Both the position numbers and the translations under genes were made by a program. This document shows, piece after piece, positions 7,060 to 52,149 of a stretch of 58,684 nucleotides of DNA. Source of the stretch: Octopus bimaculoides (lineage: Eukaryota); NCBI RefSeq assembly GCF_001194135.2, contig NC_068981.1:4627781-4686464 (forward strand), given 5' to 3'. The notes beneath the pieces were generated by a model. It had not been told where the DNA came from and ran no database searches. It saw only the letters and a program-made list of their open reading frames with translations. How positions within the stretch are numbered: position 1 is the first letter of the stretch; the number at the start of each line of letters is the position of its first letter.

Positions 7060-7330
7060 AGTAGTCATGCTTGAATGGTGCTTTTTACGTGCCACCAGCA
7101 CAGGAGTCAGTCAGGCGGCACTGGCAACGACCACACTCGAATGGTGCTTTTTACATGCCACTGGCATGGTACCACTCAGCCAGCAGTGGCATCAACCACA
7201 CTTGAATGGTGCTTTTTATGTGCCACTGGCATGGGAGCCAGTCAGGCGGCACTGGCAACAATCACGCTTTAATGGTGCTTTTAACGTGCCACTATCATGA
7301 GTGCCAATCAGGCAGTACTGTCATCGGCCA
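7060..7330. repeat. Internal variable tandem repeat of SINE family C
   Basis: About 4 units beginning gaatggtgctttt(t)a.gtgcca. Confidence 0.75.
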
Positions 7331-7769
7331 CGAGAACGATTTCAAATTTTGGCACAATTTCAGGGGAGGGAATAAGTCGATTACATCGACACCCAGTGCT
7401 TGATTGGTCCTTCTTTTATTGTCCCTGAAAGAATAAAAGGCNNNNNNNNNNNNNNNNNNNNNNNNNNNNNNNNNNNNNNNNNNNNNNNNNNNNNNNNNNN
7501 NNNNNNNNNNATTTCAGTCATGACCATGCTGTCATTTTAAGAATAAGAAGGACTACATTCTCTAATATATATCCATTCCTTTCCCAAGACAACAGAATGT
7601 ATGATGGAGATTTGGCTGCTATTTCTGGCAAACTAAGCAACTACACAGAGCAGTGATTCTCACCCTTTTCAATATCTGGGCCAAATCCCAAACCTGGATT
7701 TCTGGTGGGGCGAGGGGACTGCACCAGAAAATTTTGAGCTGAGTGGGGGTGCTAGATTCCCTTGTTCAA

Positions 7770-7890: not shown

Positions 7891-8845
7891 ATAAAGTACT
7901 TTTGCTTTCCTTCATTGGACACTAAACTCCACTTGCGAAGACCTGTTGAAGCAAGTGAAATCGAAATCGAAATAAATTCGACTGGCACCCATGCCTATGT
8001 TGTCTACTTCATTGGACACGAAACTCGGCTTGCGAAGACCTGTTGGGGCATTCTTGGCACTTGTGCCGGTAGCACGTGTAAAGACATTCGAGCGAGATCG
8101 TTGCCAGTGCCGCGGGACTGACTCCTGTGCAGGTGGCACGTAAAATACACCATTTTGAGCGTGGCCGTTGCCAGTACTGCCAGACTGGCCTTCGTGCTGG
8201 TGGCACATAAAAGCACACACTACACTCTCGGAGTGGTTGATGTTAGGAAGGGCATCCAGCTGTAGAAACTCTGCCAAATCAGATTGGAGCCTGGTGCAGC
8301 CTTTAGGTTCCACCAGTCCTCAGTCAAATCGTCCAACCCATGCTNNNNNNNNNNNNNNNNNNNNNNNNNNNNNNNNNNNNNNNNNNNNNNNNNNNNNNNN
8401 NNNNNNNNNNNNNNNNNNNNNNNNNNNNNNNNNNNNNNNNNNNNNNNNNNNNNNNNNNNNNNNNNNNNNNNNNNNNNNNNNNNNNNNNNNNNNNNNNNNN
8501 NNNNNNNNNNNNNNNNNNNNNNNNNNNNNNNNNNNNNNNNNNNNNNNNNNNNNNNNNNNNNNNNNNNNNNNNNNNNNNNNNNNNNNNNNNNNNNNNNNNN
8601 NNNNNNNNNNNNNNNNNNNNNNNNNNNNNNTTTGGTTGCTTTTTCGAGAAGGTCAAGTGACCGCATACAGGCTCCCTCATTAATTTGTATCCATGGAAGT
8701 TACATTAAAATCCTAATGAACACATTTAATTAAATCTGTGAAAATGTTATATTAACTGAACATGGTAATAAAAAAAATGCAATAACTGGTTCAAGAATTG
8801 CAAAATAATGGCAGAATTTGGTAAAAATTCATTTTGTTACCACTT

Positions 8846-9135
8846 TTAACCCTTTTGTTACCATATTTCTGTTGAAACACTGCTTTTGTTTCAATTAATT
8901 TTGAAAATGAAGAAGAAACTCGTCATTATTAAACTGGTGTTTGGAATAGAACACAAAATTTTGATGGAAGGTTTTTAGATCACTTTAACCCTTTTGTTAC
9001 CATATTTCTGTTGAAATACACTGTCTTTGTTTCAATTAATGTTGAAAATAATGAAGAACTTAGGGAAACAACTTTTGTCATTATCAAGCTGGTGTTTTGA
9101 ATATATAAGCTAGCATGGATGGTTTTAATTAAGAT
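8846..9135. repeat. Two head-to-tail copies (about 139 bp) of a dispersed TTAA-CCCTTT-initiated repeat
   Basis: ttaacccttttgttaccatatttctgttgaaa at 8846 and 8985. Related copies at about 37360-37510 (reverse) and about 51870-52110. Confidence 0.75.
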
Positions 9136-9236
9136 CAACTTGTTTCAGGATAACATGAAATACATTAACTGAAAGTTTAAACACACACAATAAATAAATA
9201 ATACAAGACAGAAACAAAATAAATATTTTCGTTAAT

Positions 9237-10289
9237 TTATTTCTTTGAAAAATACTTATCCAAAGTCATTTGTGTTCCGTTTTTATTGTTTTCTTTCATT
9301 TTCTCTGCATGAATCTGTTTGTAGCAAGACAGTACATTGTCCAAGTTCTGCTGAACTTTTGTTCTTCTTTCAATGTTAGGGTCAATATCCATTATTAACT
9401 GCTTGAATTTTTCAAATTCTTGAAACATTGTATCAAGTCCTTTTACAGTAATTTCTATCTTTTGTTCTTCATCTTTATCGTCTGCTTGACCGACTGCTTT
9501 TTTGTACATACACTCTCGACTTAAATTAAGGAGTTCATCATCACTTAATCCTTTTGAATGAGGTTCAAACAAATCCTCATCGTTTCTATTGTCTTTTTCA
9601 TCAAAATCAAGCAAAGGTTGTGGTTTTTGTATATTTTCTTTCTTTATTAAAAACGTTTTCGAAGGCATTTTTACCCAATATAAGTTCATTTCATCAGTAT
9701 TAAATAATTGTTTGTCATCGTAATCTCGTTCTTCAATTATTTTTTTAAAAGTGTTTGGATCTTTGTCTCTTGTATATTTGTCTACACATCCAGCCTCCCC
9801 TGTTATACGAACATTGTGAATCCCTGTCCGAGTTTTAAACCTCTCAAACCAACCAGAACTAGCAGTAAAAGTCTCTTTCATTTCTGCTGCTGTTAGAATT
9901 TCATTTTCTTTCATTAAATTTCTTTTAATTGCAGAGAAAATATTTAAAGCTTTCATTTTAATAGTCATAGTGTTTAGAGGAATTTGCTTAAGGTTGCAAT
10001 CTTCAATCCACAAAGACAAAAGATGCTCCATTTCAATCATAATCCGACTTCTATTCCTTGTTGTTTGCAGACCCAAAGTTGACGCCACTTTACCTTTTTC
10101 CTTATAGTCATCAATTTTCTTTAGAATTGCTCTCACAGTCGACTCATTCATTCCTAAATCTCGTCCTATTTTTGCTTTACTTTCACCACGTTCATGCCTT
10201 TTTATAATTTCCAATTTACTATCCAGAGTTAACACTTTCCTCCTCCTCTTAACACCAGAATTAACCTCATCAATCTTTCTTTTATCCAT
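9237..10289 (-). CDS. Tigger/pogo (CENP-B/TIGD-like) transposase-derived protein, 350 aa, lacking the DDE core
   Basis: Uninterrupted ORF from ATG at 10289 (the ORF track starts at an upstream TTG). N-terminal HTH (RRRKVLTLDSKLEIIKRHERGES...IGRDLGMNESTVRAILK), CENP-B/Tc5 HTH (MEHLLSLWIED...KALNIF...FTASSGWFERFKTR), start of the DDE domain (LFNTDEMNLYWVKMPSKTF), then a direct jump to the Tigger C-terminal region ending QMTLDKYFSKK. Confidence 0.8.
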   Translation of the reverse strand: MDKRKIDEVNSGVKRRRKVLTLDSKLEIIKRHERGESKAKIGRDLGMNESTVRAILKKIDDYKEKGKVASTLGLQTTRNRSRIMIEMEHLLSLWIEDCNLKQIPLNTMTIKMKALNIFSAIKRNLMKENEILTAAEMKETFTASSGWFERFKTRTGIHNVRITGEAGCVDKYTRDKDPNTFKKIIEERDYDDKQLFNTDEMNLYWVKMPSKTFLIKKENIQKPQPLLDFDEKDNRNDEDLFEPHSKGLSDDELLNLSRECMYKKAVGQADDKDEEQKIEITVKGLDTMFQEFEKFKQLIMDIDPNIERRTKVQQNLDNVLSCYKQIHAEKMKENNKNGTQMTLDKYFSKK

Positions 10290-10543
10290 AATTAAGGTCA
10301 AATTACATTTAGTACTTTAATGTCTATCACTGTACAAATGGAAGTTAGAATGATTTACATAAAAACACTATAAAATGGCGACTAACCTCCACACCACACT
10401 AACAGCTAAATATATTGTTCCAATTCATAAGTCATGTGACCTTTAAGTTGTTCTCTATTACATCTACATGACAATGTATAAATATATATATACTGCATCA
10501 GTATATAAAACCGTGCAAATTCAAAGCCATGATAATTAAAGGT

Positions 10544-10913
10544 TTATTACCTCTGCCTTAGTAAAGGCAGAGGTATTGTTTGCAGTCATGTTTGTTTGTC
10601 TGTTTGTCCGTGGACAAGATATCTCAAGAACTGCTGGATGGATTCAGATGAAACTTTCAGGGATGTTTGGCCTTGTGACTGGCACAAACTGATTAGATTT
10701 TGGGATCGATCCAGTACCAGACAAGGATTCTGGATTATTTTTCCTGATTTTTACTTAAATTTTTTAGAGCAGTCGGGTTCATTTTTAGTATTCTCGTTTG
10801 TGAGAGCAGTCGAGTTTTCAGCTATTCTCATTTTAAAAATCATCTCTGGCCAATCGTTGAGAGGACGTTGGTGTTGTCTTGGCGGAGGTTTGCACTCTCT
10901 GAGTGCTCTTGTT
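10544..10913 (+). mobile_element. Non-autonomous Helentron-type element (HINE/DINE-1-like)
   Basis: 5' ttatt-ACCTCTGCC-ttagtaaa-GGCAGAGGT hairpin, then a (GTTT/GTCT) microsatellite. 3' GGCGGAGGT subterminal IR plus GCACT-ctctg-AGTGC hairpin and tcttgtt end. Confidence 0.8.
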
Positions 10914-36700: not shown

Positions 36701-37993
36701 ACTTATTATTTTTATGTTTTTAAGCCTGATTCTTATTCTATCGGTGCCTTTTGCTGAACAACTAAGTTATAAGGATGTAAACACACCAACATCGGTTGTC
36801 AAGCAGTGGGGGTAGAGAACAAACACAGCACTAGGACATTCACTCACACACATACACACATGATGGGTTTCTTCCAGTTTCCATCTACCAAATCCATTCA
36901 CAAGGCTTTGGTCGGCCCAAGGCTATTGTAGAAGACACTTGCCCAAGGTGCCACGCAGTAGGACTGAACCTGGAACCTTGTAGTTGGGAAGCAAGCATCT
37001 TACCACACAGCCATACCTGCACCTATATGAACTAATTTTATGGAATTCCATGTTATATTACCTCTTATTACAAGACAGATTTTATTGAATTCTTGGAAAA
37101 TTCTTATTCAATTCACTAAAATTTTATCCAAATATATTTTTATATCCTTAATAGAGAAATAGAATCAGAGATTTCTAAATAAAACATGTTTTTGAGAAAA
37201 TGTATTCCTCAAAACAAATTTATTGCCATAAAAGGGATAAAAAAATTTTACATATTACGTTTCTAAGTATTAGGGATCCTTACACTGAGAAATGCACCCC
37301 GCAAAAAAGAGAAACGTATGAATTTTTTTGTGTCCTCTTATCTTCACCCATTATCATTAGTTCTATGATATAACCTTCCTGTTTTCAAGTAACCTAAATG
37401 GAAACCTTCCATCAAAACTTTGTGCTAATTTATGTTCCACACAATAGCTTGATAATGACAAAGTTATTTTACTAAATTTGTCGTTATTTTCAAAATTAAT
37501 TGAAACTGTAACGCGAATTCTGCTTAAATTTGAACCATCTCGTTCAGATTCCGAGTTTAGAAGTACTGCCTAATTACATTTCTATAAAAGGCTGGACCAG
37601 TTCCGAGAACTTGAAGATGGCATCATAAAAGGCATATTCGCTCACATGAACATTTCTTGACCAATCGTTATCGACCGGTGTATGACCAGTAAGGCAGCAG
37701 ACTTTAAAGAAAAGATGTGTAAATTGTATTTTCAAAGTTCCCAGAAGTTTTGCTTAATATTATAAAATACTGGACAACTAAGCTCCAAGAAAGAGTTACA
37801 TCAAGTGCTTCACAGAACTCTGTCGCTTGGTTCCATAAAAGGTTGCTTTCACTTCTTTTTATTTTGTCCAACATGCTTTGTATATCATATTGACAAAAGG
37901 TAATCAATGTTGTGCTGTAATACCGACACATGCACACACACACACACACACACATGCGCTCACACACACAGACACACACACATGCATACATAC

Positions 37994-39646: not shown

Positions 39647-41447
39647 AACGACAGTGGTTTAGCTGTGATGTTTACTTGGCTATTCAGTGATTCAGTTTTG
39701 AATCTGCTACAGTTTCAACAGAAATATGGTAATACATGGGTTAATTGAAAAGACGCAAAAGAGTCTTCAATCAAATAATTCATCTTTCTGTTTTGGTATT
39801 GGATAAATTCAAAAAGCTCCAAAACCATTTTAATTTTATCAGACACGGCAATTTTTCGGCTCCCTATTTAATTTCACTGCTTCCCTCTTAGTGGAAACTG
39901 TCATCTGTTTACAAATTTCTGGTGAAATAATTGCTTTTAATTTAGACACAAGGCCAACCATTTTGATACTATCAGCCCCAGTGCTTAAATGGTCTTTTAT
40001 TTTATCAACCCATGGCTTAGTGGTTATGGTAGTTGGCTCATGATCGTAAGGTCATGAGTTTGATTCCTAGGCAACACATTGTGTCCTTCAGCAACATACT
40101 TTATTTCATGTTGCTCCAGTTTACTCAGCCGACAAAACTGAGTGGTACCTGTAGTTCAAAGGTAGCCATGGCACATTCTGTGTCTCGCTGAATCTCCCTG
40201 AGAACTTCATTAAGAGTACAGGTGTCTGTGGAGTGCTCAGCCACTTGCACATTAGTTTCATGAGCAGGTTGTTCCATTGATCGGATCAACAGGAATTCTC
40301 GTCATCGTAATTGACGGAGTTCCACTTTTCTTTCATTCATTCTTTCTTTCTTTCTTTCTTTAAAAATTTTATCAACCCCAAAAGGATAAATGACAAAATT
40401 AATTGTGGCGGGATATGAACTCTGAAAGAAGAGAGCAGAGAGAAATACCACTGATAATTTTCTCAACATTCTAACGATTTTGCTAATCCTCCATCCTTGG
40501 TTTTCTGGGTTTGAATGGAATGGTAATTGCGTTGAAAGGTGGGTTGTTTGGAGAAATTTTTATTGATTAAATTTGGGCTTATGTTATTGATTAGAATCTA
40601 TTCATATATATATATTGAGTCAAGTACATCAAAATCAAAATCAAATGGAAATTGTAGTTGTGATCCCCGTGCCAGTGGTGCGTAAAAGGTACCATCCGAA
40701 CATGGCCAATGCCAGAGCTGCCTTGACTGGCTTCCGTGCTGGTGGAACATAAAAAGCACCAACTGATCGGGGTCGTTGCCAGCCTCCTCTGGCCCCTGTG
40801 CCGATGGCACGTAAAAACCACCTACTACGCTCTCGAAGTGGTTGGCATTAGGAAGGGCATCCAGCTGTAGAAACACTGTCAGATCAGACTGGAGCCTGGT
40901 ACAGCCTCCTGGCTTTCTGGACCCCAGTCGAACCATCCAACCCATGCCAGCATGGAAAAACGGACGTTAAACGATGATGACAATGATGATGATGATATAT
41001 ATAGAACTTTGTAAGCCGGTGTGCTTATTTAGGTGTGTCCCTCTTGACAGGTAGGTATAGGATAGGTCATTAGTTTTAGTTGTTCCTGGTTTTAGTGGAT
41101 TTAGTCATTTGCTTTGACAATGTAAAGCTCAAAGATATAAGATATTATTAGCCATAGATGCATGTAGAACCTTAGAACTTTCATAGTGGGGGCATGTAAT
41201 CTCTAACCCAAAACTGATGACTGAGTTTCACAGTGATGATGTTGATTTGTTGGTTTCCTTATCAATTACATTAATTGAATAATGAGGTCAGATCAAATGA
41301 CAGTACCCCATACCTACCCTGTAGCCACAAAAATTTGACACATTTGGAGAACACCTCAATCCTTCACAACTCCCTGCGAATATAATGATTGTCTAACGTT
41401 ATTTTAATTTAGTGTTTCCAGCCCCCCTACCCCCACGATTTTTAATC

Positions 41448-47764: not shown

Positions 47765-48656
47765 AGTTTTACACATTATTTTGGTCACTTATTTTGGTCA
47801 CTGAGTTTTACACATTTACACTTTTATCGCCTTCAAAGTATTCTTCATTTGAAGCAATACATTGGTCCAGGCGCGTTTTCCACAATTCGAAGCAGTGCTG
47901 CAACTCTTGGGAAGTGATGTCTTTTAACGACTCCGTCGTTTTTTTCTTCGCCTTGTCCACATCTGCAAATTCCGTAGCACCAGCTTTAATCACCAGTGAT
48001 GACCTTCGAAAAAAGATCCGGATGAACTTCCAATTGTTCTTTCAGTTCATGACACGCATTCAGTCCTGACTGCTTTTGATCTTCCGTGAGCAAGCGAAGC
48101 ATAAATTTTGCAACAACTCTTTTCATTCGCAATTCCTCGTTCAAAATTCGTTGGCAGGAGCTCCAGGACACACCAGTCATACCAATAAGTCCGTCAATTG
48201 TTCGGTAACGGTCCTCCAAAATCAGTTCACGAATTTTCATGTTTTCATTCGTTCGGGAGGTCGACGGTCGTCTTGAACGAGACTGATCGTCAAGCGACAA
48301 GTGACCATTCCTAAAGCGTGGAAACCACCCGTAAACTTGTGTTTTGCTAATGGCAGCGCCCTTGTAAGCTGTCTGAAACATGACAACTGTTTCGGCGTCC
48401 ATTTTCCCCACCAGAAAACAGAATTTCACGGAGGTACGCTGTTCCTTCGTTTCAGCCATAGCAAAAAAATCGACGAACAGGGGAGAAGCCCTGTAAAACA
48501 AATATACACCACGTGGAAGTACGACTACAGCCGAAGCCGTCGGTTGGCAGACTGATGCTTGAGGGTCGCATCAAGTGGATTCCAGAGGCGGAAGCCCGAA
48601 CTACAACGGGCTTGTCCCACAGAGAACGTTTTCGGTTACTTTTGGGTACCCCTTCG
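47765..48656 (-). mobile_element. Internally deleted mariner transposon
   Basis: 5' TIR (TA)CGAAGGGGTACCCAAAAG. ATG at 48459: EQRTSVKFCF...QVYGWFPRFRNG...RPSTS...KVITGD*SWCYG, then a jump to the C-terminal ...QCIASNEEYFEGD. 3' TIR absent. Confidence 0.9.
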
Positions 48657-48742
48657 TATACATATATATATATAATGTAATGTAATATAATGTAATGTAA
48701 ATATAATGTAATGTTATATGTGTGTGTGTGTGTGTGTAAATA

Positions 48743-48923
48743 CAGTAATCCCTCGCTATATCGCGGTTCACCTATCACGCACTCAGTACATCGCGATTCA
48801 CCTATCGCGGACTCCTCAGTATATCGCGTGTTTCTGCGGTCGATAGGTATTTATATTTTTTTAGATATGAATTATTTCTGTGGGAGGTTTCGGAACGTAG
48901 CCACGGTAGTCGAGGGATTACTG
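48743..48923. mobile_element. Tigger/pogo-type MITE (181 bp)
   Basis: Perfect 13-bp TIRs CAGTAATCCCTCG, TA TSD on both sides, subterminal atcgcg.ttcacctatc repeats. Confidence 0.9.
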
Positions 48924-48925
48924 TA

Positions 48926-51774: not shown

Positions 51775-52149
51775 CTTTAAATTAGAAAACAAAGATCCTG
51801 AAATATCTATTTGCGAGTTGTCTTTCTATCTTTTCAATGACGAAAAAATCATACAATCTGCCCAACATTTTAAAAACCCTTTCGTTTCTCTATTTCTGTT
51901 AAAATAATCTGTCTTTGTTTCAAACCATTTTGAAAACAACGAAGAATTTTGTGAAATAACATCGTCATTTATTTAAGCTGCTGTTTGAAATATAAAATAA
52001 TAGATTTTGATAGAAAGTTTTAATTTAGATCACTTTAACTCTTCTGTTAACAAATTCCCAAATAGACACACTGCCTTTGTTTCAAATGGTCTTTAAAGTA
52101 GTGAAGAATATCGTGTTTGAAACACTTATATCTGTATATATATGTGGGA

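Follow-up and report, generated by a model that had tools for sequence, protein, structure and literature searches.

Does the long open reading frame on the minus strand of this octopus locus still belong to a transposon, or has it become a gene of its host? The locus was taken from Octopus bimaculoides chromosome CM046601.1 (assembly GCA_001194135.2) and studied within a window of 58.7 kb, by which we mean the whole stretch of DNA analysed. A preliminary description of this stretch had pointed to an intact Tigger/CENP-B-like reading frame with a truncated catalytic domain and a C-terminal PIP box, and had proposed it as a candidate domesticated gene. We examined the frame and its flanks, its orthologs, the modules of the encoded protein, the constraint upon them, and the likeness of the gene to known transposase-derived genes.

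The reading frame, its flanks and its orthologs

The frame occupies positions 9237-10289 of the minus strand and encodes 350 aa, from an ATG at 10289-10287 to a TAA at 9239-9237, free of internal stops as described before. It is the longest ORF of the window (the runner-up has 203 aa), and with the local composition and a stop frequency of ~0.072 per codon, the probability that 350 codons remain open by chance in one species is ~4e-12. Based on the ORF, its orthologs, dN/dS and the codon-position pattern, we annotated 9237..10289 (-) as a DDE-less Tigger/pogo-derived gene with a single-exon CDS including the TAA. The stop codon is overlapped by an AATAAA hexamer (9236..9241, -), identical in all three octopod species compared, which may serve as a poly(A) signal. 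The earlier statement that all other transposon remnants of the stretch are broken was checked in part: of the ten further ORFs that reach 130 aa, one (47986-48501, -) gave a transposase-HTH match, a weak one to the HTH_48 of Mos1 (E=4.6e-5). Searches with tblastn detected neither a second Tigger-like coding remnant nor a copy of the ORF within the window.

Repeat finding, and Smith-Waterman comparison of the upstream with the reverse-complemented downstream flanks against shuffles, revealed no TIRs flanking the ORF that exceeded the shuffled background, whether flanks of 800 bp or of 2.5 kb were compared, in O. bimaculoides as well as in O. vulgaris, in agreement with the previous observation that none lie nearby. 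Candidates that were considered and discarded comprise an inverted pair of score 52 in O. vulgaris, which is a dispersed SINE-like repeat, a signal in masked O. bimaculoides sequence, which is an artefact of assembly-gap Ns, and a TACAG upstream of the ORF read as TA+CAG, i.e., a Tigger-like 5' end, for which the best 3' counterpart found by eye matched at 13/18 positions, below noise. A TA-flanked CAGT-type MITE is present in the same window; its TIR, CAGTAATCCCTCG, searched with <=2 mismatches, matched the MITE alone and nothing near the ORF.

Syntenic orthologs, named at the outset as a check on domestication, were found in two other octopods, O. vulgaris and a third species. In O. vulgaris (L001) the frame is intact at 350 aa with 96% aa identity, and lies within a collinear alignment of 21 kb, and in the third octopod (L003) it is again intact at 350 aa, with flanks that are collinear on the contig. 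The 90% protein cluster consists of three members, one per species, and no paralogous protein was found between 96% and ~59% identity in the protein collections. Judged from these collections and the window, the octopus gene is apparently single-copy. Logan contigs were rejected as transcripts, because their ends fall in microsatellites and they run collinear with genomic sequence, and are thus genomic. No orthologs were seen beyond the three fairly close octopods. With orthologs limited to these species and a maximum dS of ~0.27, the gene is therefore young, and constraint on it is documented across a limited time span only.

Protein modules and evolutionary constraint

The N-terminal part of the protein carries two HTH domains. 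HTH 1 (aa 14-58; 10116..10250, -) matched CENP-B_N (Pfam PF04218, E=4.7e-14; 52 bits vs a cutoff of 21.2), and a basic KRRRK patch, listed as preceding this domain, occupies aa 14-18. AF2 predicts helices at aa 22-68 (pLDDT ~86), with matches to the PDB entries 2elh and 1hlv; the best PDB sequence match to HTH 1 is 2elh, the CENP-B-type HTH of fly Dan. HTH 2 (aa 86-159; 9813..10034, -) matched HTH_Tnp_Tc5 (Pfam PF03221, E=1e-10; 41.8 bits vs a cutoff of 22.2), and here the predicted helices span aa 82-155 (pLDDT 74-90). The Pfam matches thus confirm that both HTH domains have been kept. Foldseek returned HTH matches only for the whole AF2 model, and its best PDB match was the CENP-B(1-129)/DNA complex (1hlv, E=5e-4).

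The DDE_1 domain gave no Pfam match in the 350-aa protein. What is left of it, as recognized by alignment to full-length transposases, is a stump of aa 190-217 (9639..9722, -) with the first catalytic Asp, D199, in FNTDE (nt 9693-9695), predicted by AF2 to be unstructured (pLDDT <50). Alignment to the full-length relatives P0005, P0007 and P0008 placed the deletion junction at ~nt 9638/9639, between K217 and E218, where '...MPSKTFLIKK' is retained and the frame resumes with 'ENIQK...'. About 235 alignment columns are absent, and with them Asp motifs two and three (LDNAxxH and QPxDQ), so that the alignment and the missing DDE_1 match uphold the in-frame cut after the first Asp motif that had been noticed before. 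Having lost the other two catalytic Asp, the protein is unable to cut or join DNA.

Downstream of the junction follow an acidic, predicted-disordered linker (aa 218-281; 9447..9638, -), homologous to the acidic region behind the DDE domain of Tigger, and a C-terminal helical hairpin with a conserved DPNxER motif (aa 282-339; 9273..9446, -). The hairpin is modelled by AF2 as two helices (aa 282-302 and 306-348, pLDDT ~82) and is kept in full-length as well as DDE-less relatives. It showed no credible match to Pfam and PDB sequences, including the CENP-B dimerisation domain, and a profile of the C-terminal module retrieved no CENP-B chain from the PDB at E<=10; the predicted fold is reminiscent of the CENP-B dimerisation domain in topology only. 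The best match to the C-terminal module, hnRNP A/B (E=0.059), was rejected as a chance DPNxxRS match. Overall, the AF2 model is confident for the two HTH domains and for the C-terminal hairpin, and disordered in between.

The C-terminus reads ...NGTQMTLDKYFSKK and includes QMTLDKYF (aa 340-347 of 350; 9249..9272, -), a PIP-box-type motif read from the sequence, which lies four residues from the end, in a tail toward which pLDDT falls. It fits Qxx[ILM]xx[FY][FY], and its earlier reading as a match to the PIP-box consensus therefore stands; the motif is canonical. The last 33 nt of the gene are without a single nucleotide change across the three octopod species, and the PIP box is invariant. Homologous tail motifs among the relatives are QTSLLKFF, QSKITDFF and QASLDRYF, and by sequence comparison the hairpin and the PIP tail are inherited from full-length Tigger transposases rather than newly acquired. 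The pogo transposase binds PCNA through its C-terminal PIP motif in the two-hybrid system (PMC5371812, citing Warbrick 1998), and the passages of that source on the motif describe it as conserved in Tigger and Lemi1, and its functional role in transposases as unresolved. By homology to the pogo transposase, we infer that the octopus protein might bind PCNA as well.

Comparison of the orthologs showed how these parts have been constrained. NG86 dN/dS values for the three species pairs were 0.155, 0.196 and 0.145 (binomial p 3e-7 to 2e-14); this range (0.145-0.196), well under 1, indicates purifying selection, and dN/dS was another check that had been named at the start. The CDS contains no indels, whereas 2-37 gap columns occur in each block of the aligned flanks, and variable CDS sites are distributed as 22/15/57 over the three codon positions. 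The dS values of 0.107 and 0.23-0.27 agree with flank divergences of ~8-10% and ~20-22%, respectively, and since dS equals flank divergence, the low divergence of the gene does not derive from transfer or conversion. Within the protein, pN/pS is ~0.06 for HTH 1 and ~0.04 for HTH 2 (the omega of the HTH domains ranges from 0.02 to 0.06), ~0.22 for the C-terminal hairpin and ~0.55 for the acidic linker, the most relaxed part; the DDE stump has almost no substitutions among the three species, synonymous or non-synonymous. Selection preserves three modules: the bipartite HTH head, the two-helix hairpin and the invariant PIP box.

A conserved block of 170 nt, recognized by cross-species identity, extends upstream of the CDS (10290..10459, -) and represents a putative 5'UTR or promoter. 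It is 97.5% identical between O. bimaculoides and O. vulgaris and 84% identical in the comparison with the third octopod (distal flank, 78-79%). The block contains TTCTAAC (10344-10350), TACAG (10330-10334) and an ATG-TAA mini-uORF, and an in-frame TAA lies 33 nt upstream of the start codon. The first two motifs, the TACAG with its AG at 10331-10330, had been interpreted as branch point and acceptor of a spliced gene. Both are indeed present; splicing, however, is unsupported, because the CDS is a single exon and the third octopod lacks the branch-point A, with TTCTAGC in place of TTCTAAC and TAAAG in place of TACAG. Since stops occur in all three frames after the proposed acceptor, any upstream exon would be 5'UTR only.

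Possible function and alternative explanations

We consider it very probable that the 350-aa ORF is a selectively maintained, non-catalytic DNA-binding gene. Its reading as a domesticated gene came through three of the four tests set for it in advance, namely those concerning TIR-flanked copies (for which the protein collections and the flanks were searched), orthologs and dN/dS. The best explanation overall, which we favour with some reserve, is that of an Octopus-lineage host gene, exapted from a Tigger/pogo DNA transposon, whose product would act as a replication-coupled adaptor; the mechanism in the stricter sense, a PCNA-coupled adaptor or repressor, is put forward tentatively. An internal in-frame deletion removed ~235 aa of the DDE core. 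The protein would enter the nucleus via its KRRRK patch and bind a specific DNA motif with its two HTH domains, most likely a terminal-repeat-like sequence of the parental Tigger family that is now scattered as relics or MITEs; we infer that the MITE of the window could be among the sites bound. The protein would dock on PCNA by means of its PIP box and its flexible acidic linker, and the hairpin could possibly mediate self-association. Such a non-catalytic, replication-coupled DNA-binding adaptor might compete for ends and PCNA with whatever Tigger transposase is active or, alternatively, might mark and protect its binding sites during replication, like the fission-yeast CENP-B homologs at LTRs.

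A domesticated gene could also encode a transcription or chromatin factor of the ordinary sequence-specific kind that has acquired new targets in the host. Q..L..YF would then be kept as part of the terminal helix or for some other interaction instead of docking on PCNA, and neither replication nor Tigger relics need be involved. Most known pogo-derived host proteins (e.g., CENP-B, POGZ, JRK, psq/dan and other DBD-only genes) work through DNA binding without PCNA (PMC7386202, PMC13548663, PMC10027918), AF2 places QMTLDKYF at the end of a long helix, and the last PIP position is degenerate in the parallel DDE-less genes discussed below. Nevertheless, we regard this explanation as rather unlikely, given that the motif is fully canonical, has the distance to the C-terminus seen in bona fide PIP degrons and tails, has not changed by a nucleotide across three species, and is homologous to the PCNA-binding motif of pogo (PMC5371812).

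It is very improbable that the ORF encodes a KP-like trans-repressor from an internally deleted, still or recently mobile non-autonomous Tigger, as a selfish or regulatory product of the transposon family, and is not a host gene. In the P-element KP repressor, an in-frame internal deletion has removed catalysis and has left a site-specific DBD together with a downstream dimerisation/interaction region; KP elements are mobile, multi-copy and TIR-bearing, and belong to another superfamily. The octopus gene may be likened to KP in its DBD-sparing deletion, but unlike KP it appears immobile, apparently single-copy and conserved between species. A retained DBD with a core deleted in frame is the expected product of abortive gap repair, and many in-frame DDE-less derivatives with different junctions exist (P0016, P0020, P0022, P0032, P0034, P0039, P0044 and P0063), as does the TA-flanked CAGT-type MITE in the same window. 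However, TIRs and TSDs are absent within 2.5 kb, the protein forms one cluster with a single member per species, no further Tigger coding remnant is found in the window, and the gene occupies the same chromosomal position in all three species, its dS matching the divergence of the flanks; moreover, purifying selection between orthologs is unexpected for a dead non-autonomous insert. Hardly credible, finally, is a neutral relic left open by luck, non-coding conservation (an enhancer or an antisense transcript) or an assembly artefact: the upstream 170 nt are conserved too, and the scarcity of synonymous and non-synonymous change in the DDE stump hints at nucleotide-level constraint, but the improbability of a chance-open frame, its identical length in three species, the lack of indels and an omega significantly <1 all argue against it, the excess at third positions effectively refutes it, and the sequence is present in independent assemblies and read sets.

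Relation to other pogo-derived genes

The domesticated octopus gene shares its superfamily and its CENP-B_N + HTH_Tnp_Tc5 head with CENPB, TIGD1-7, JRK, JRKL, POGK, POGZ and CENPBD1 of vertebrates. Like the octopus gene, the vertebrate pogo-derived genes have no TIRs but syntenic orthologs and a Ka/Ks well <1 (PMC7386202). All 12 of them still have a complete DDE domain, including those with a decayed triad (PMC7386202), whereas in the octopus gene the DDE core has been physically deleted save for the stump with the first Asp, and the gene is octopod-restricted and much younger. In Drosophila, CG4570, cag and toy, as well as pipsqueak/dan, have kept the transposase HTH and discarded catalysis, as the octopus gene has (PMC13548663). 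These fly domestications retain the DBD alone, often fused to other domains, and the octopus protein adds to it the hairpin and the PIP box of the transposase. The transposases of Drosophila pogo and human Tigger1 carry a C-terminal Qxx[ILM]xx[FY][FY] homologous to the octopus motif, but are active or consensus transposases with full DDE and TIRs, both of which the octopus gene lacks. For a replication-coupled role, the closest functional analogy may be seen in Abp1, Cbh1 and Cbh2 of fission yeast, which are pogo-derived, bind LTRs and stabilise replication forks there (PMC5371812); they differ in a retained DDE-like domain, no reported PIP box and an independent, fungal domestication.

In O. 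bimaculoides itself, Mukherjee & Moroz 2023 reported seven CENPB-type TE-derived TFs and inferred pogo domestication in the Octopus lineage (PMC10027918), and the octopus gene may be one of these seven. Their catalogue is at the level of domains, without analysis of synteny, selection, deletion junction or PIP box, and reports no homologs in the closest neighbours, whereas we found orthologs in other Octopus genomes. The gene is a real, lineage-restricted addition to the known class of pogo-derived host genes.

Its architecture has parallels. A second DDE-less Tigger gene in Octopus (CAI9724799.1) is under purifying selection (omega 0.28), and a marsupial one (Sarcophilus LOC105749892) is syntenic, with an omega of 0.167. 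Both display the layout of DBD plus C-terminal part, each with a different deletion junction, and an NJ tree of the DBD gives a weak indication (no bootstrap, deep branches) that these two and the first Octopus gene are not mutual closest relatives. The layout common to all three suggests a functional unit, made up of the N- and C-terminal modules, that can be reused. The second Octopus gene and the marsupial genes have L, I or V in place of the last PIP aromatic (QTSLLQYL, QPTLLKYI/V), and with this position degenerate, PCNA docking is not obviously needed for retaining the architecture. As a speculation to which we give little credence at present, DDE-less 'mini-transposases' could constitute a kind of host gene that has arisen repeatedly under convergent selection, with a bipartite CENP-B-type head, a hairpin and a PIP-type tail. 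They would act as sequence-specific factors tethered to PCNA, policing Tigger-type repeats, or other sites, where replication forks pass. One Tigger subfamily would have given rise to at least three of them by independent recruitment, each through a different internal deletion: two in Octopus and one in marsupials. If true, this would provide the long-unexplained PIP box of pogo/Tigger with a testable host function.

Vertebrates, fungi and flies provide well-documented cases of pogo/Tigger transposase domestication, whereas the cephalopod cases have so far been domain-level lists. The locus described here is a clean invertebrate example in which most of the classical features coincide: no TIRs, synteny, a frame intact in three species and an omega of ~0.15. 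It is architecturally informative in that selection has retained the DNA-binding head of the transposase and its hairpin plus PIP tail, with the catalytic core cut out from between them, and together with the parallel genes it offers a tractable system for the role of the pogo/Tigger PIP box.

Architecture of the window gene

The ORF of the window gene, a Tigger/pogo-derived gene, runs on the (-) strand from the ATG at 10289 to the TAA at 9239-9237. Its 350 codons lie in a single exon, and no other ORF in the 58.7-kb window comes near this length (the runner-up has 203 aa); given the local base composition, stops should appear about once in 14 codons, and 350 open codons would occur by chance with P ~4e-12. 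Pfam matched CENP-B_N (HTH1, aa 14-58, E=4.7e-14) and HTH_Tnp_Tc5 (HTH2, aa 86-159, E=1e-10) in the protein but found no match to DDE_1, and the only PDB sequence matches were the CENP-B-type HTH of fly Dan (2elh) and human CENP-B(1-129) (1hlv). In the alignment to three full-length transposase relatives (P0005, P0007 and P0008), the first catalytic motif (F196-N-T-D199-E, then ...MPSKTFLIKK) is present and ~235 aligned columns are missing, including LDNAxxH and QPxDQ, which carry the second and third Asp; past the deletion the frame picks up at ENIQK, within the acidic stretch that follows the DDE domain. The C-terminal sequence is ...NGTQMTLDKYFSKK, and QMTLDKYF (aa 340-347) fits the consensus of the PCNA-docking PIP box, Qxx[ILM]xx[FY][FY] (PMC5371812). 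Searches within 0.8 and 2.5 kb of the ORF in two species revealed no flanking inverted repeats above shuffled controls. The preliminary description had claimed a long stop-free ORF that keeps both HTH domains, a DDE domain cut in frame after the first Asp motif, a C-terminal PIP box and a lack of nearby TIRs, and all of these features are confirmed.

The AlphaFold2 model, built on a shallow alignment of 11 sequences (mean pLDDT 60.7), predicts with confidence two helical domains for DNA binding (helices 22-68 and 82-155, pLDDT 74-90) and, at the C-terminus, a helical hairpin (282-302 and 306-348, pLDDT ~82); residues 159-277, including the DDE stump, are modelled without structure, and the stump is thus no folded remnant. 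DNA-bound CENP-B(1-129) (1hlv, E=5e-4) was the sole significant Foldseek match of the model in the PDB. Pfam and PDB searches gave neither a domain model nor a sequence relative for the helical hairpin. Its motif, LT..L..F....DPNxER....Y followed by Q..L..[FY]F, is common to full-length Tigger transposases and truncated relatives, and the PIP box is therefore inherited from the parental transposase and not an innovation. The Drosophila pogo transposase binds PCNA via this motif, which human Tigger and Arabidopsis Lemi1 share and whose functional relevance is unexplained (PMC5371812, citing Warbrick et al. 1998). In silico, the protein is non-catalytic: a CENP-B-type DNA-binding head in two parts is followed by an acidic, flexible linker, the helical hairpin and, at the terminus, a canonical PIP box.

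Upstream of the ATG, the TTCTAAC (10350-10344) and the TACAG (AG at 10331-10330) that had been read as signs of splicing are both found. All three frames carry stops 3' of the putative acceptor, in TGATAGACATTAAAGTACTAAATGTAATTTGA, and a TAA in the frame of the ATG precedes it by 33 nt, so any upstream exon would be 5'UTR only. The third octopod has TTCTAGC in place of TTCTAAC, with loss of the presumed branch A, and TAAAG in place of TACAG, changes that, if anything, weaken the idea of a splice acceptor. Identity is higher in the 170 nt before the ATG (97.5% and 84%) than in the more distal flank (92% and 78%), which would fit a promoter or 5'UTR and is no proof of splicing. About 260 nt upstream of the ATG, at 10546-10570 (-), there is a DNA hairpin with a perfect 10-bp stem (CCTCTGCCTT TAC TAAGGCAGAGG, then TAAT), which occurs only once in the window, can be recognised in each of the three species and may mark the terminus of another, older TE fragment.

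Orthologs, copy number and selection

A single locus, on Octopus bimaculoides chromosome CM046601.1 (GCA_001194135.2), encodes exactly this protein. Its sole close relative in the protein search was P0001 of O. vulgaris (350 aa, 96% identical, annotated as 'transposable element-derived 1-like'), and besides O. bimaculoides and O. vulgaris the three-member 90% cluster includes only a Logan contig from SRR11869391. No relatives were found between 96% and 46% identity in an exhaustive representative search (3253 relatives) or between 96% and 59% in a word-indexed protein search, and hence no close paralogous protein is on record. Over its entire length, the 21-kb locus of O. vulgaris (L001) aligns collinearly with that of O. 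bimaculoides (L002); the non-coding blocks are 75-95% identical and broken by indels and repeats. The contig of the third octopod (L003) is collinear from ~315 nt upstream to ~160 nt downstream of the CDS and is genomic, not a transcript; its sister contigs from the same run series end at microsatellites. Intact syntenic orthologs, proposed earlier as a check of domestication, thus exist in both species.

A dispersed short repeat family starts ~180 nt downstream of the stop codon and bounds the 3' flank of the gene, with a tandem-like pair of 90% identical copies (8841-8917, 8981-9058) and further copies at 51875-52108, 37423-37506 and 39712-39744. Tandem units of ~65 nt (7074-7143, 7205-7274, 7280-7332), inverted relative to 8085-8212 (78-89% complementarity), adjoin assembly gaps at 7442-7510 and 8345-8630 and are probably a satellite or foldback repeat; because of the 286-nt gap ~600 nt downstream of the gene, part of the 3' flank is unassembled in O. 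bimaculoides. Elsewhere in the window lies a 181-bp MITE (48743-48923). Its 13-bp TIRs (CAGTAATCCCTCG) match perfectly, TA duplications flank it (48741-48742 and 48924-48925), and its terminus seems similar to the human Tigger1 TIR; ~240 bp from the MITE, an ORF at 47986-48501 (-) gave a weak Mos1-type HTH_48 match (E=4.6e-5).

Pairwise dN/dS by Nei-Gojobori was well under 1 among the three octopods, as the domestication reading had predicted: 0.155 for O. bimaculoides and O. vulgaris (20 synonymous and 14 non-synonymous changes, dS 0.107), 0.196 for O. bimaculoides and L003 (39.2 and 36.8, dS 0.23) and 0.145 for O. vulgaris and L003 (46.2 and 32.8, dS 0.27). Adjacent non-coding mismatch (~8-10% and ~20-22%) is at the level of dS, so neither gene conversion nor a recent transfer explains the low protein divergence. 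Gaps are absent from the CDS in the three-species comparison, against 2-37 gap columns per block in the aligned flanks, and codon positions 1, 2 and 3 hold 22, 15 and 57 variable sites.

Constraint is modular, and in silico each module shows selection proportionate to its likely function: pN/pS is ~0.06 in HTH1, ~0.04 in HTH2, ~0.22 in the C-terminal hairpin and ~0.55 in the acidic linker, and the last 11 codons, including the PIP box, are without change in the three species. The DDE stump (9624-9722, aa 190-222) is nearly free of substitutions of any kind among the three species (relative to the third, ~2.5 differences in 99 nt, compared with ~7.5% for the whole CDS), yet predicted to be disordered; nucleotide-level constraint, a short linear motif or chance could account for this.

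Proposed function and known systems

We infer that the protein would recognise a particular DNA motif, a TIR-like sequence of the parental Tigger family being the most plausible one, and would dock on PCNA, and that the helical hairpin may mediate self-association; its role could then be that of a replication-coupled adaptor or of a competitor of active transposase. An ordinary transcription factor, in which the unchanged tail is conserved for other reasons, is a possible but rather unlikely alternative. The usual criteria of molecular domestication are absence of TIR or TSD, synteny and purifying selection (PMC7386202, PMC13548663), and the window gene agrees with them; it also passes three of the four refutation tests set by the preliminary description. 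That it is the product of a still-mobile non-autonomous element is very unlikely. A neutral or non-coding relic is the least probable of all, neutrality being rejected for the three pairs (one-sided binomial p = 3e-7, 3e-10 and 2e-14).

In architecture, the closest analogy is the P-element KP repressor. In function, the nearest analogy is found in fission yeast, whose pogo-derived CENP-B homologs attach to LTRs and keep replication forks stable (PMC5371812). The DDE domain persists in each of the twelve vertebrate genes derived from pogo (PMC7386202), whereas the window gene is without the DDE core; in Drosophila, domestications that left only the DBD are known (PMC13548663). Seven TE-derived TFs of the CENPB type were counted in O. 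bimaculoides by a screen at domain level, whose authors inferred that pogo had been domesticated in the Octopus lineage without analysing synteny or selection (PMC10027918); our literature search returned no paper on a domesticated Tigger in octopus. Pogo-derived host genes are already known, and the window gene adds one; what is noteworthy in it is that both transposase ends are preserved and the core is cut out.

Parallel DDE-less genes

The next-best full-length matches were marsupial proteins of 323-324 aa (Sarcophilus, Antechinus, Gracilinanus, Trichosurus), 42-46% identical to the window protein across 99% of the query and also DDE-less, with a different junction (...ASADKD|VWKHI...). 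The single-exon gene, LOC105749892 and its orthologs (L005/L006:6001-6972 in Sarcophilus, L007:6001-6975 in Gracilinanus), is collinear between the Australian Sarcophilus and the American Gracilinanus, with dN/dS 0.167 at dS 0.234. It appears to be an undescribed parallel domestication; the twelve vertebrate pogo-derived genes surveyed in PMC7386202 all retain DDE. A second Octopus gene, CAI9724799.1 (270 aa; L008:3001-3813 on O. vulgaris OX597819.1, ~109.21 Mb), is 45% identical to the window protein and has HTH-HTH fused to the same C-terminal module at a third distinct junction, ending in KQTSLLQYLKK; its ortholog in the third octopod (L009:115-924) has collinear flanks (dN/dS 0.28, p=2e-4). 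Where the PIP box would have its last aromatic, the marsupial and second Octopus genes carry L, I or V, and the canonical motif is therefore peculiar to the window gene among the selected cases. An NJ tree of the DBD, without bootstrap support, gives a weak indication that the two Octopus genes and the marsupial gene are not each other's nearest relatives.

Many more in-frame DDE-less derivatives with differing junctions were found, including Anolis TIGD1 isoform X2 and Logan and metagenome proteins; gene callers have a bias towards reporting survivors that stayed in frame. Among these derivatives, proteins of ~185-380 aa from diverse sources (P0016, P0020, P0022, P0032, P0034, P0039, P0044, P0053, P0056, P0063 and P0146) have an N-terminal DBD and a C-terminal tail with the DDE core partly or wholly gone at different junctions; they may be genes, artefacts of gene models or dead elements. 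The parallel DDE-less genes hint at a possibly general pattern, in which both ends of the transposase are kept and the core is excised.
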